Below are positions 31,601-36,478 of a stretch of DNA of 64,000 nt, piece after piece; the first letter of the stretch is position 1, and each line of letters starts with the position of its first letter. Source of the stretch: Oculina patagonica (Eukaryota); contig NC_135764.1 of the NCBI RefSeq assembly GCF_052425735.1, positions 7,688,001-7,752,000 of the forward strand. The letters are read 5' to 3'. The notes beneath the pieces are model-generated. The model saw only the letters and a list, made by a program, of their open reading frames with translations, was not told the origin of the DNA and did not search any database. A program made the position numbers and the translations under genes.

Positions 31601-34600
31601 ATGGATGTCTTACCTAGCAGCCGTTTCCTCGGCCTCGTAGCGTTTGGCTGCGGGGCATATGTAGCGAGGGAATTGTGCGTAATGTATCTTGTGAAGCCGT
31701 GGAAAAGGGAAGAAAATGGTTATGAAAGACCGCCTCCTCGAGGAAACTTCCCCGACTTACGCCTGCATAACAACCTGATGGCGAATCATCTTACACCCGA
31801 TCTGTACGAATCGCTAAGGTAAAATTGCTGCATATAGAGAAGTAATAAGGAACTAGTTATTGCTAGTATGCGTTTCGAGCTGTTCAGTGTTTATTTGGAA
31901 TATTGTCAAAAAAGTTAACTTTGCCCTTTAATTTCTATTATTGGATGATATCAAATTCAAAGCATTGGCAGGCAGGCAGGCGAGAAAAAATAAGAAATAT
32001 GGCAAATGGAAGATATATTTTTGATGAAATTCTAAGAACTAAAATTGAAACAATTTTTACTGTTAAGTGTCGTTTTCTATGTGAAGCATCACGTCTCTAT
32101 GGCCTACTTAGTAAAGTAGTTTTAATTAATTGGTCGATATTGATATTGCATTATACATTTTACTTTTTATATTCGCTTCATGCCGTCTTGGTAACGTTAA
32201 AATATGGTTCTGCTCATGCAGTTCTGCACATCGATTTTGAATAAGTTAAAATTTCACTAAATTGATTAAAAAATGACAAAAAAGGCAAAATTAAAAGCGT
32301 GTTAGAACAGATCTTAAAAATTATCATATGGCACAAATACGTCTTCGTTTCCTTTGAAAACTGAAAGTTTCTAGTTTAATTTCGGTTTTGTGTTCGTTAG
32401 TATTCGCGTTATAAAAAAGAGCAAAGAAAAAAGCTTTAAATTATAATTGTTTTTCATTTTCTGGAAAACAACTGACAATTTTTTTTCGAAAGTTTCCTCC
32501 ATAAAAACGAAAGGTAGGTTGGCAACCGGAACAAAAATCCATCTGATATGACGCTTTCAGTTTAAGTGTTTTGGTATGAAGCGGAAAACATTTTCAATTC
32601 GTTGAGAAACAAAACTATCTGCTGTAAAGAATAATTAAGTCACAAGCACTTCAAAAATACGCGCAGGAAGTTAAAAAGGTCCGCTTGACAAATACTATTA
32701 ATACTTTTGGGGCTTCGTAACTATGTTTAAAAATCCACATTCTTTGTTTATTATAGATATTGTTCCTCGATATAAAACATTTTCTTTTTTAAATTTATCC
32801 TTTGTGACAAACAAAAGAAAAACCGAGTAGAAAATATTCAGAATAGCTTGGCCTACATAAAAACGTAGCAATCATAGCAATAAAACACTCGCGACTGAAA
32901 AAGTCACAAAATGAGTATTCTCAAATACTCTGTAATGACATTTTAAAGTAACACTAATGTTTGAATCTCTAATAAACCATTTCCAAGATTTTAAACATAA
33001 CTTTGTTTTTAACTCTTTAAAAAATACAACCGTGAGGAGTGAGCATTAAAATGTCGTTTTTCATCCATTTCTCTGATTTTAAAAATCTGAACATGAAGGC
33101 AACTGACCACTTCCAGCGGTTTCACTCTTGACCAAGCCATTCAAGTCGGCGTGGACAACCCGGGGGTGCCATGGCAACGCTCATCCGGGATCATAGCAGG
33201 AGACAGAGAGTCATACGAAGTGTTTGCGCCTTTGTTTGACGCAATTATTGAGGAATATCATGGACACAGGAAAAATGATTTTCACCCGAGAGACATGGAC
33301 AGTCGAAAAATTATCGATGGTAAACTGAAAAGCGAATACGTTTTGTCATGTCGGTTGCACACGCGACGCTCCATCCGGGGATATTGTTTGCCAGCAGCAT
33401 GCTCCCGGGGCGCTAGAAGGAACCTGGAGGGCCTCATTCGTATGGTGTTCATGCGACTGGGAGGTGAGTGGAGTCAAGGTGAGGGACATTAACAGGGTGT
33501 TTTTATGTAAGACTAAGAAAGGAGTACCTTGTAAAAGGAGCTTTGTGAATAATCGGCAAGAATTTATTACCTGAAACAACCCAATAAATATTACAAAATA
33601 TTGATAGTGTTACTCGATGAAATTAATGTTCTTGGTTATTTCCAGAAAATTATACAAAACTATTGCATTCCGATCAAGCTTGCGAATTGGTTAGAAACGC
33701 CAGGGTAGTCATTCCAAGATAGACGTATAATTTAGGATGGATCTTTAAATAAGTTAAACTTACTAAAGTCAAAATAGGTTTCCTGAAAACACTTTAGGTG
33801 TTTTACTATCTCTTTAATTTGCTACATGGGGCCCCGCTGTGATAATTCCATTTTCTTTTATCCAGTAGTCCATTCATATTTCTCTTTATTTTTTTATATG
33901 TCGGCTGTTTTATATGTCAGAAAGTATATGTCCAGCAAATGTAAATATGTTCGATTCTAAGACATAATATGACACCGTGAGTTTCCAAACTTGCCTTTGT
34001 TGTTGCATTTTCTTTTGTAGGTGAGTTTGAAGGTGAATACAAACCCATATCCGAGTTTACAGATAGAAGACTCAGTGTATTTAATGTTTCATCGCAACCC
34101 ACGTCACCACTGATCACGTGCTCAGGGCGTGCTCGTGACTGGCCAGAGTCACGTGGTATATTCCGCAATAAAGACAATACGTTCGTTGTGTTTGTCAATG
34201 AAGACGATCACGTGCAATTCAGGTGCTTTGACAAAGGAGGCAACTTGCAAGGTGTGTTTGATAAGTTGGTCAGGGGAATGGCCGCGTTTGAGCGAGAGCT
34301 GAAGAAGTCTGGGGAAGAGTTCATGTGGGACGATCACCTTGGTTACATAGTGTCGGATCCAATCTATCTCGGCACAGCGCTTGACGTCAGAGTGCGAGTT
34401 AAACTTCATCACCTTTCCACGGTAAGAAGTCGTGCTGTTCTACATGCAACGTCTGTTACAGTTTGATAGCAACATGTCTGGTGGGCCGCGTGTCTATAGT
34501 GCGCATTCATTGAAAGTATGACTAATTGTCCAGGTACAGGTCTCCCCTGGAGAATTAGTCATACTTTCAAAAATGGCATTCAATACAAAATAAACCAGGA

Positions 34601-36478
34601 GCTGAATAATTGTTGTTAAGTCGGGGTAAGAAAGAGGTGATACGAGTAGCCATATTTGATCCCTGATTAAGTTGCAGGCAATGACTCCGTTGTACATGTA
34701 TTTATCAGATAGTCTCATTTCTCTCTCCCCAGGATCCAAGACTCCGATGGATACTAAAGTCATATAAACTTGAAAAGAGGAGAACTGGTAAGCAGCAATG
34801 ACAAGGCTTGTTCATTATAAAAATTTCAATGGTCTTTATCAAATTTCAATTACATGTACGTATTCTTTTTTGGGAGTTCGGTACTTTAACAAGACAATTG
34901 GAACCTTCAGAACACGAGAACGAGAAATGAGTACTAGTACGACTTTTCACACTCTAGGGCTGATGCTTTAGATTATTACATTTCACACAAATCTCGTACC
35001 AATAGTCTCCTTTTCAACTAGACAGCGACAGGGAGGAGTGAGGGGTCTGGATTGAGATTCAAAAAACGTACTCGTACTCGTTCTCCGATCTGAAGGTCGC
35101 TAATACGCCCTAGATTTCTGTTATTCTCGTCGAACGATCACCTGTCTGCTTAAAAGTTTATTTATATTTTCTTGCACAGGAATCTCTGAAGGGGAACTGC
35201 TCTCTGGAGTAATGTATATTCACAGTACTCAGACCCTTGGTGTTTCCGAGGTATGTCACGTCACCTCCTTTTAGCTATTTGGAATTAAATGAGTAACATT
35301 GTGAGGTCGAATTTATAATTTTAGTTAATAATAAAACGCGCGCTTTGAACGTGTCGTGTCGTGTCGCATCGCGTCACATCGCGTCGGCTTGGATATAGTC
35401 AGCCAAGCCGATGAGCCTGGCGACGTAGGATAATCGGACCACGTGCGCGTAAGTCGTTTTATCAGAGGCAAGATAAACACGAGCATGGCGTATCAATGTC
35501 TTGCACGGTGTTAGCTTTGCTTTTTAATTATCTGTAAACAAGAGTGTCGTTTTCTATATTTTCCATCCCTTATATTGAAAATTATTGACCAAGGTCATTG
35601 ACTTGTGTAAACTTGCCTTTCGTATTTTTGATAGGCAAGTTTTACACAATTCAACTTGTATCTGCGATGACAAAAATGAACGACATATTTTTATTTAATT
35701 TGTGTAATTTTATGCACAAAAAATATCGCAACAAGTGAGTTAATAACGTAAGTGGTGACTCATTTGCTAAAATTACTTTTAAGCCCGGGCCAAACGAGGA
35801 TGAGAGTTGACGAGAGTTGACTCTCATGAGAGTTTTCGTCAACTCTTATCGGCTATCATCAACTTGGGCCAAACGATAACAGTCCGTCAAACTCTCATCG
35901 ATTCTCACAAAAAATGGGACATTTTCAAAAATACCATAATATTTTGTTTCTACCCAAAATTTTGCTTAAGCATTGTTTTGCTGTCCCAAGAGAAATTGAT
36001 AACAATGCTTATGCAAAATTTTGGGTAGACAACAAAGAGTATTATAGTATTATTTTTTGAAAATGGCGAATTGAGCACGTTCAAAGTCGATGAGAGCGCA
36101 TGAGAGTGGAGGAGAGTGCATGGAAGTTCCATGCCCAACGAGTTTGAGAGTTTGAAAAATCATCAACTCTCATCCTCGTTTGGCCCGGGCTTTACTTGTT
36201 TCTACGAGCTAAGGTACGCACCAGCCTGACTATTTGATGATTTTCCATATTCTCGTACTTGTCTGGTTGATAATGTGCCTACATTGTAGGGGGAAATTAC
36301 AGATTGATCTTATCTTGGTAACACTATTTTCTCCCTATAGGTGCATTCTGTCCAGCGGTTATGTGATGGTGTTAATCGACTGATAGAACTAGAGCGCATG
36401 CTCGAACGAGGAGAAGACATCGAGGACGCTTTGCCTACTCCCAAGATTCCTCGCGGTCAACTTGAATTTAATATATAG
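31601..36478 (+). CDS. Creatine kinase-like (ATP:guanido phosphotransferase fold) protein, ~415 aa, with mitochondrial-CK-like N-terminus and divergent active site
   Basis: Exons 31601-31818, 33099-33463, 34021-34421, 34733-34787, 35180-35250, 36341-36478(TAG); 1248 nt, no internal stop. CK-family motifs: FPDLRLHNNLMA, GFTLDQAIQVGVDNPG, AGDRESYEVFAPLFD, YVLSCR..RSIRG, ARDWPESRG, VNEDDH, EFMWDDHLGY, LGVSEV, LIELERMLERG. Confidence 0.9.
35782..36191. mobile_element. PIF/Harbinger-type MITE
   Basis: TIR AGCCCGGGCCAAACGAGGATGAGAGTTGA (perfect, 29 bp); TTA TSD. Confidence 0.85.

Follow-up and report, generated by a model that had tools for sequence, protein, structure and literature searches.

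Introduction

Phosphagen kinases are textbook, extremely conserved enzymes. Since many enzyme families include pseudoenzymes, meeting a candidate among them is less surprising than it might be. The bacterial protein-arginine kinase McsB shows that the catalytic domain of this fold can be re-purposed for another substrate, and the prozyme of trypanosome S-adenosylmethionine decarboxylase (AdoMetDC; PMC5201418) is a catalytically disabled duplicate under selection, in which the active enzyme's oligomer interface survives. Among cnidarians, a jellyfish survey (Front Physiol 2026, PMC13679545) described a basal "Clade 1" of sequences with phosphagen-kinase domains that carry no annotated creatine kinase (CK)-binding motifs in all but one of the five species; its authors, who presented no selection, expression or residue analysis, were undecided between divergence and incomplete assemblies. 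The present study concerns a gene of the coral Oculina patagonica located on the forward strand at positions 31601-36478 of a 64,000-nucleotide stretch, hereafter the window (NCBI RefSeq assembly GCF_052425735.1, contig NC_135764.1, positions 7,688,001 to 7,752,000), which encodes a CK-like protein with a largely replaced active site and is referred to here as pseudo-CK.

The closest described systems are the mitochondrial CKs (MtCKs; ubiquitous uMtCK and sarcomeric sMtCK), represented by ACROYT_G043059 in Oculina and by the MtCK of Nematostella. Pseudo-CK shares with them the two-domain fold (about 43-45% identity, with a template-modelling (TM) score of about 0.9 to the structures 1qk1, 4z9m and 1crk), an N-terminal extension whose hydrophobic segment, rich in Gly/Ala, precedes (Y/F)PDL..HNN, a similar ..LERG.DI..PTP.. 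tail, three intron positions, the residues of the dimer interface and a confident modelled heterodimer. It differs from them by the absence of C283, E232, R132, R236, R292, R341, H66, H191, H296, I69, V325 and the GTGGVD loop, by an N-terminal segment conserved like the mature protein whereas the MtCK presequence drifts, by a stem of about 1.4-1.6 changes per site and by two additional introns. McsB (8gqd), which is distantly matched in sequence, has no N-terminal domain but retains the catalytic Glu and the arginines that bind the nucleotide, the coral protein being the reverse. The AdoMetDC prozyme, although unrelated in fold and pathway, may serve by analogy as a working model for the coral protein, for which a heteromer is a model prediction. 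Finally, the medusozoan Clade 1 (PMC13679545) may be the jellyfish counterpart of pseudo-CK, the two being likened by description.

Replacement of the active site within a retained fold

Residues are numbered by alignment on the 381-aa mammalian CKM, and the comparison was made first with 9 and then with 35 canonical CKs, from sponge to mammal, in which the functional positions vary little or not at all. The Oculina protein departs from them in the specificity loop (H66V, I69Q, V72S and R96Y), at the nucleotide and phosphate contacts (R132H, R236Q, R292D, H296R, D335Y and R341T, together with the deletion of H191 along with the DDHFLF segment, so that the two histidines in contact with adenine, H191 and H296, are both gone), in the catalytic core (W228F, E232D, C283D, S285I and N286Y) and in the flexible loop (G321R, G324I, V325S and D326E), where GTGGVD reads RTGISE. 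S128, R130, E231, D233, H234, R320, T322 and G323 are unchanged. Three of the five phosphate-binding arginines are thus replaced (R132H, R236Q and R292D), as is R341, leaving only R130 and R320, the latter being additionally lost from the anemone orthologues. The reactive-Cys signature C-P-[ST]-N-[ILV]-G-T reads D-P-I-Y-L-G-T, Asp283 being present in every member of the clade examined and CPSN in 252 of the fetched phosphagen-kinase domains. At position 232 of the NEEDH motif, where Glu is the catalytic base of CK (EC 2.7.3.2), Asp is found in corals, Ala in Nematostella and Thr in Actinostola, with E231, D233 and H234 retained.

The loss of residues is concentrated at the active site. Indeed, with the 35 canonical CKs as reference, 103 of the 172 near-invariant columns are retained, while among binding or catalytic positions the number is only 5 out of 16 under a strict list (Fisher p=0.017) and 8 out of 29 under a broader one (p=1.4e-4), both lists reflecting established knowledge of the UniProt annotation and the CK mutagenesis literature. 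A first-pass annotation, made from the DNA letters without database searches, had proposed such a concentration, the persistence of R130 and R320 as the only phosphate-binding arginines, and a series of substitutions running from H66V through the loss of H191/DDHFLF and C283D (CPSN to DPIY) to R341T; the alignment reproduces all of these. While its residue list stands, its reference to rabbit muscle numbering does not, the numbers being those of the Met-inclusive human/Torpedo scheme and the old rabbit numbering being one lower. As judged from its sequence, the protein fails every criterion of an active CK that was examined.

The protein belongs to the ATP:guanido phosphotransferase (phosphagen kinase) fold family. 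Pfam domain PF02807 is matched in exon 2 (E=1.5e-17, 64 bits for a cut-off of 25.7) and PF00217 in exon 3 (E=3.3e-24), and the top sequence matches in the PDB are mitochondrial and cytosolic CKs with about 45-50% identity. An AlphaFold2 (AF2) model built from 48 sequences has a mean predicted local distance difference test (pLDDT) score of 83.3 and a predicted TM score (pTM) of 0.79, and Foldseek aligned it to CK crystal structures with target-normalised TM scores of 0.87-0.92 at 44-45% identity, structures of lombricine kinase (LK), glycocyamine kinase (GK) and arginine kinase (AK) being matched as well. The earlier proposal that the CK fold is kept end to end is thus borne out by both Pfam domains, by the pLDDT of 83 and by these TM scores.

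Orthologues and phylogeny

Orthologues were sought by an exhaustive representative search, which yielded fragments and the Nematostella protein P0049, and by two profile searches, among which the mixed-alignment profile yielded full-length orthologues. With P0049 alone as query, the coral orthologues were not returned, whereas the mixed-alignment search returned them. The same signature is found in the stony corals Orbicella, Montipora (2 species), Acropora digitifera (partial), Pocillopora (3 species), Stylophora and Desmophyllum, and in the sea anemones Nematostella (XP_032222908, 437 aa; older model A7RG45) and Actinostola, so that the substitutions noticed in Oculina recur in each of these genera. 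The family covers at least 7 scleractinian genera, 2 sea anemones and 1 further animal lineage (ENA loci L017 and L019), in which the gene has the same N-terminal helix, D283, Q236 and R296. At these two loci (L019:5363-12970 and L017:227-2978, from ENA ERZ25072724 and ERZ4903303), the orthologue has an extra intron inside exon 2, and a 7tm_1 G-protein-coupled receptor gene lies a few kb downstream in both, pointing to conserved synteny.

Derived states common to corals and both anemones are D283, R296, R321, I/L324 and an acidic residue at 292 (D/E), together with the loss of Arg at 132 and 341, while position 236 holds Gln, with Lys instead in Nematostella. The L019 lineage shares D283, Q236 and R296 but has Lys at 292, its position 321 falling in short exons outside the recovered part. 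Positions 69, 228, 232 and 285 differ between corals and anemones.

In two maximum-likelihood trees, the pseudo-CK sequences form one clade, with support of 100/99 and 100/100. Its stem is long (1.4-1.6 changes per site), and the branches within Scleractinia are short and track the Robusta/Complexa species split. Furthermore, all 5 introns of the Oculina gene are common to the Nematostella gene, which has one extra.

Purifying selection

Spliced mRNA contigs of the orthologues are present in other coral transcriptomes, and four of these contigs were used to build codon alignments. The ratio of nonsynonymous to synonymous substitution rates (dN/dS, or omega) is 0.07-0.16 for all coral pairs; in the least saturated pair, Oculina and an Orbicella-like transcript, dS is 0.55-0.68 and omega 0.11-0.14, and omega per protein region is 0.05-0.20. 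By tree path lengths, the pseudo-CK clade evolves about 2-3 times faster than canonical CKs within corals, yet it is clearly constrained. The gene evolves under purifying selection. Among six coral species, 16 of the 29 former active-site columns and 217 of the 356 others are invariant (p=0.56), indicating that the former pocket is not drifting, nor is it under unusual constraint. Independent RNA contigs and other species carry the substitutions, which are therefore no assembly errors. The first-pass annotation had read the locus as a selected non-catalytic or neofunctional protein and not as a decaying pseudogene, and had named a ratio near 1 and assembly errors as the results that would speak otherwise; spliced transcripts, orthologues and the ratios given above support that reading.

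Probable mitochondrial-type origin and N-terminal helix

Forty-nine residues precede FPDL in pseudo-CK, with the layout of MtCK presequences, namely a short polar start followed by a hydrophobic Gly/Ala-rich helix, which AF2 predicts at residues 7-30. The position of this extension matches that of cnidarian and fish MtCKs. Between Oculina and Nematostella, the N-terminal segment of pseudo-CK is 45% identical and the body 44%, with a common core AFGCG.Y.AREL, whereas for the MtCKs of the same two species the presequence is 29% identical and the mature enzyme 81%. As it is conserved like the body and unlike an MtCK presequence, the helix appears to be part of the working protein, for instance as an uncleaved membrane anchor.

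The pseudo-CK introns at aa 195, 328 and 347 coincide with those at aa 200, 337 and 356 of the Oculina MtCK P0310. The closest clusters in the ESM Atlas are mitochondrial CKs, and nothing beyond generic CK and AK clusters was found there. With its MtCK-like conserved N-terminus, its three common introns and its kept dimer interface, pseudo-CK looks to be derived from a mitochondrial CK. The Oculina genome also holds two canonical MtCK-type genes, ACROYT_G043058 and G043059 (L002 and L003, at G000:C14:4214200-4220603), which are arranged head to head about 6 kb apart.

Dimer interface

A heterodimer was modelled between residues 45-415 of pseudo-CK and residues 48-414 of the Oculina MtCK P0310. 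Its interface score (ipSAE) is 0.77, against 0.16 for the best control. Among solved complexes, 51 of 78 attained that mark, as did 2 of 108 mismatched pairs; agreement between the runs covers at least 93% of contacts, and the pLDDT of the partner is at least 87. The modelled contacts are those of the canonical CK dimer interface, involving the N-terminal PDL region, the SRG..RR strand and the ARDW loop. According to the model, the dimer interface is retained, and this is the sole thing that the complex score shows.

Gene structure, transcripts and neighbouring features

The six exons within 31601-36478 are joined by GT..AG introns throughout and, as tested by joining them within the region 31000-37200, give a coding sequence of 1248 nt with 415 codons, one terminal stop and no internal stop. 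The 415-aa product is identical to P0269 (XP_078376997.1), automatically named in RefSeq "creatine kinase M-type-like isoform X2" of Oculina patagonica. Comparison of the region 31400-37300 with public runs confirmed all 5 junctions as GT..AG joints in intron-less contigs of X6, X4 and X1 (3 runs from 3 studies); no listed run is recorded as RNA, and the RNA nature of these three is deduced from the intron-less contigs. Record 13 of X6 (1608 nt) extends over 31522-36751 with every intron spliced out. In the poly-A raw-read run X23, no reads fell on the gene and reads fell only on an intronic repeat, which is not evidence of silence. Both the six-exon structure of an uninterrupted protein of about 415 aa and its junctions, as first read from the DNA, are therefore found in transcripts.

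The 5' untranslated region (UTR) covers at minimum 31522-31600, X6 record 13 beginning at 31522 and X4 record 8 at 31549, and the ATG at 31601 is the first in-frame ATG past a stop. Exon 1 (31601-31818, joined to exon 2 by 31818|33099) carries the start codon and encodes both the conserved hydrophobic helix of the N-terminus (aa 9-30) and the first part of the N-terminal domain (FPDL..HNN..LTP). Exon 2 (33099-33463) encodes domain PF02807, with the specificity loop changes H66V/I69Q/V72S and the strand in which R130 is kept and R132H and G134R are found. Exon 3 (34021-34421) encodes the core of the C-terminal domain PF00217, with W228F, E232D, R236Q, I238R, C283D, S285I, N286Y, R292D, G294R and H296R and without DDHFLF/H191. 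The 55-nt exon 4 (34733-34787) includes the kept R320, G321R and the beginning of the degenerate flexible loop, the remainder of which (G324I, V325S and D326E) lies in the 71-nt exon 5 (35180-35250) together with D335Y and R341T. Exon 6 (36341-36478) encodes the C-terminal helix and the MtCK-like tail ..LERG.DI..PTP.., ending with the stop codon at 36476-36478, and the 3' UTR extends at least over 36479-36751, where X6 record 13 ends. All of these features are on the + strand.

An alternative donor located 15 nt downstream of exon 2 extends it in frame over 33464-33478 (+ strand; joint 33478|34021 in run X1) and gives the annotated isoform X1 (P0372) of 420 aa, whose 5 additional residues, EWSQG, are inserted in the interdomain linker. 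In Orbicella and Montipora, two isoforms with the same 5-aa difference are annotated as well, and the long form is used by several orthologue models, so that alternative splicing at this site seems to be conserved itself.

The gene is single-copy in the Oculina genome, where its nearest paralogues are 40-47% identical over exon 3, and a search of the 64-kb window found no further CK-like exon. Intron 5 contains, at 35781-36192, a 412-bp element resembling a miniature inverted-repeat transposable element (MITE), whose terminal inverted repeats, each 33 nt long, show 97% complementarity; a small palindromic element seems to be nested within it at about 35920-36075. A search of the same genome gave more than 1100 first-look candidates for this MITE-like element on all large contigs, and contigs of the RNA runs attain a very high depth over it, up to about 3900. 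Elsewhere in the window, a fragment of a reverse transcriptase, matched weakly by RVT_1, is located upstream of pseudo-CK at 21498-22445, and a single-exon open reading frame (ORF) with a FAM124 domain (E=5.9e-52) about 9 kb downstream, at 45426-46493.

Other phosphagen-kinase sequences were met in the searches. Many very long proteins of 1200-2100 aa (P0008-P0031 and others) have 3-4 phosphagen-kinase domains, single ones of which carry Asp, Ser, Gly or another residue in place of the reactive Cys (e.g. DPSN or SPAN), and degenerate domains may be common inside such multi-domain proteins. Two neighbouring CK domains in long open frames at G000:C10:874555-876110 probably belong to a multi-domain flagellar-type CK. 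In Nematostella, P0267 (annotated "Creatine kinase", 371 aa) is a long-branch and otherwise canonical paralogue changed in and around the flexible loop (V72C, G134C, G323D, V325D and D326N), and its active site may likewise have drifted, though to a milder extent.

Discussion

On balance, we favour the view that this locus encodes a pseudo-phosphagen kinase, that is, an old CK duplicate, most likely of the mitochondrial type, which is under selection and would act without catalysis, probably at mitochondria. Under the operational definition of a pseudoenzyme, the protein is one: residues essential for catalysis are lost, while the gene is expressed and under purifying selection across Scleractinia and Actiniaria. 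In the proposed mechanism, ATP:creatine phosphotransfer would have been lost with the two-domain CK fold and the CK dimer interface left intact. C283D and R292D/E would place two carboxylates in the former phosphate pocket and satisfy the remaining arginines internally; the presence of these acidic residues in an anion pocket suggests that the cleft is probably ligand-free and self-neutralised in its resting state. The N-terminal helix, a positional homologue of the import and sorting sequence of MtCK, would probably direct the protein to mitochondria and remain there as a membrane anchor. As to the function itself, our preferred guess is that the protein might use its dimer interface to pair with another copy of itself or with active MtCK, and might in this way scaffold or tune MtCK oligomers or membrane contact sites.

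Several points weigh against this view. Inactivity is read from the residues alone, and E231, D233 and H234 of the NEEDH motif are kept. The acidic residues found in the N-terminus are unusual for a matrix-type presequence. In the trees, the clade attaches in a polytomy with the MtCK grade. Only tree 1 places it outside the clade of cytosolic CKs (99/99), which has weak support in tree 2 (73/63), and long-branch effects are possible. The high complex score may stem from CK dimers of known structure remembered by the model, and it does not separate a homodimer from a heterodimer. The Nematostella gene may already be mentioned in the main Nematostella CK paper (Uda et al. 2012, Gene 497:214). 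Finally, the pocket is rich in arginines: R130 and R320 are kept, R134, R238, R294, R296 and R321 are new, and all are invariant in corals.

Because arginines of the pocket are both kept and gained, an anionic ligand could still bind. Between an inert protein and one with a new ligand or activity, the former is the best reading and a re-tooled ligand site is a serious rival, albeit one that we consider rather unlikely. The protein would then be a neofunctionalised binding protein or enzyme, in which the anion pocket has been re-tooled with its arginines shifted by two residues and another phosphorylated or acidic ligand is bound or turned over. Indeed, corals have lost R132, R236 and R292 and gained R134, R238 and R294, to which R296 and R321 are added, all five new arginines being invariant, and the former active-site columns are constrained as much as the rest of the protein, with E231, D233, H234, R130 and S128 retained. 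The sharing of D283, R296, R321 and an acidic 292 by corals and both anemones, and of D283 and R296 by the L019 lineage, also speaks for this explanation. However, the +2 arginine pattern is confined to Scleractinia and hence cannot represent the common function of the family: anemones have W/L at 134 and I/V at 238, the L019 lineage has T at 238 and 294, and position 294 is the only basic one of the three in the anemones and the L019 lineage, and only in part. Moreover, corals do not agree with anemones at positions 69, 228, 232 and 285, the two flexible loops closing over the substrates have degenerated, and no candidate ligand is known.

It is very improbable that pseudo-CK is, as the name given to it in databases would suggest, an ordinary active CK or some other known guanidino kinase whose active site is merely unusual. 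While the automatic annotation is creatine kinase and both Pfam domains are found, the PROSITE-type reactive-Cys motif is destroyed (DPIY for CPSN), and 3 of the 5 phosphate-binding arginines, Glu232, His191, His296, Ile69 and Val325, which are kept in the 35 canonical CKs, are replaced. Furthermore, position 96, the guanidino-specificity marker (R96), is Y, C or L within the clade with no conserved AK signature, and a position that varies in this way does not point to an arginine kinase. As for the locus being a pseudogene, whether in decay or dead only recently, or an artefact of annotation or assembly, the many substitutions at otherwise invariant sites are outweighed by an intact ORF with canonical splice sites, spliced mRNA in several studies, orthologues with intact ORFs across Scleractinia and Actiniaria, a dN/dS of about 0.1 and a conserved alternative isoform, so that the pseudogene is rejected and this explanation as a whole has a negligible chance.

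In our searches of the literature, no paper was found on a pseudoenzyme among CKs or phosphagen kinases, nor any citing these protein accessions, which agrees with the initial statement that no described CK pseudoenzyme family was known in cnidarians, apart from the possible earlier mention of the Nematostella gene noted above. It is conceivable, at a little under even chances in our estimation, that pseudo-CK represents the first family of pseudo-phosphagen kinases, older than the split between corals and anemones and anchored at mitochondria by its helix, which would control or scaffold MtCK through the dimer interface or else sense a new anionic ligand with re-positioned arginines.

Since pseudo-CK genes receive the automatic name "creatine kinase M/B-type-like", the number of active CK genes counted in corals is too high, and pathway reconstructions for them are inflated as well. 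A clade in which the fold, the interface and the N-terminal helix are kept and the chemistry is replaced, and which has been under selection since before the divergence of corals and anemones, would point to an unstudied non-enzymatic role for the CK scaffold. As Nematostella has an orthologue and good genetics, this question is directly testable, and it bears on the mitochondrial energetics of corals.

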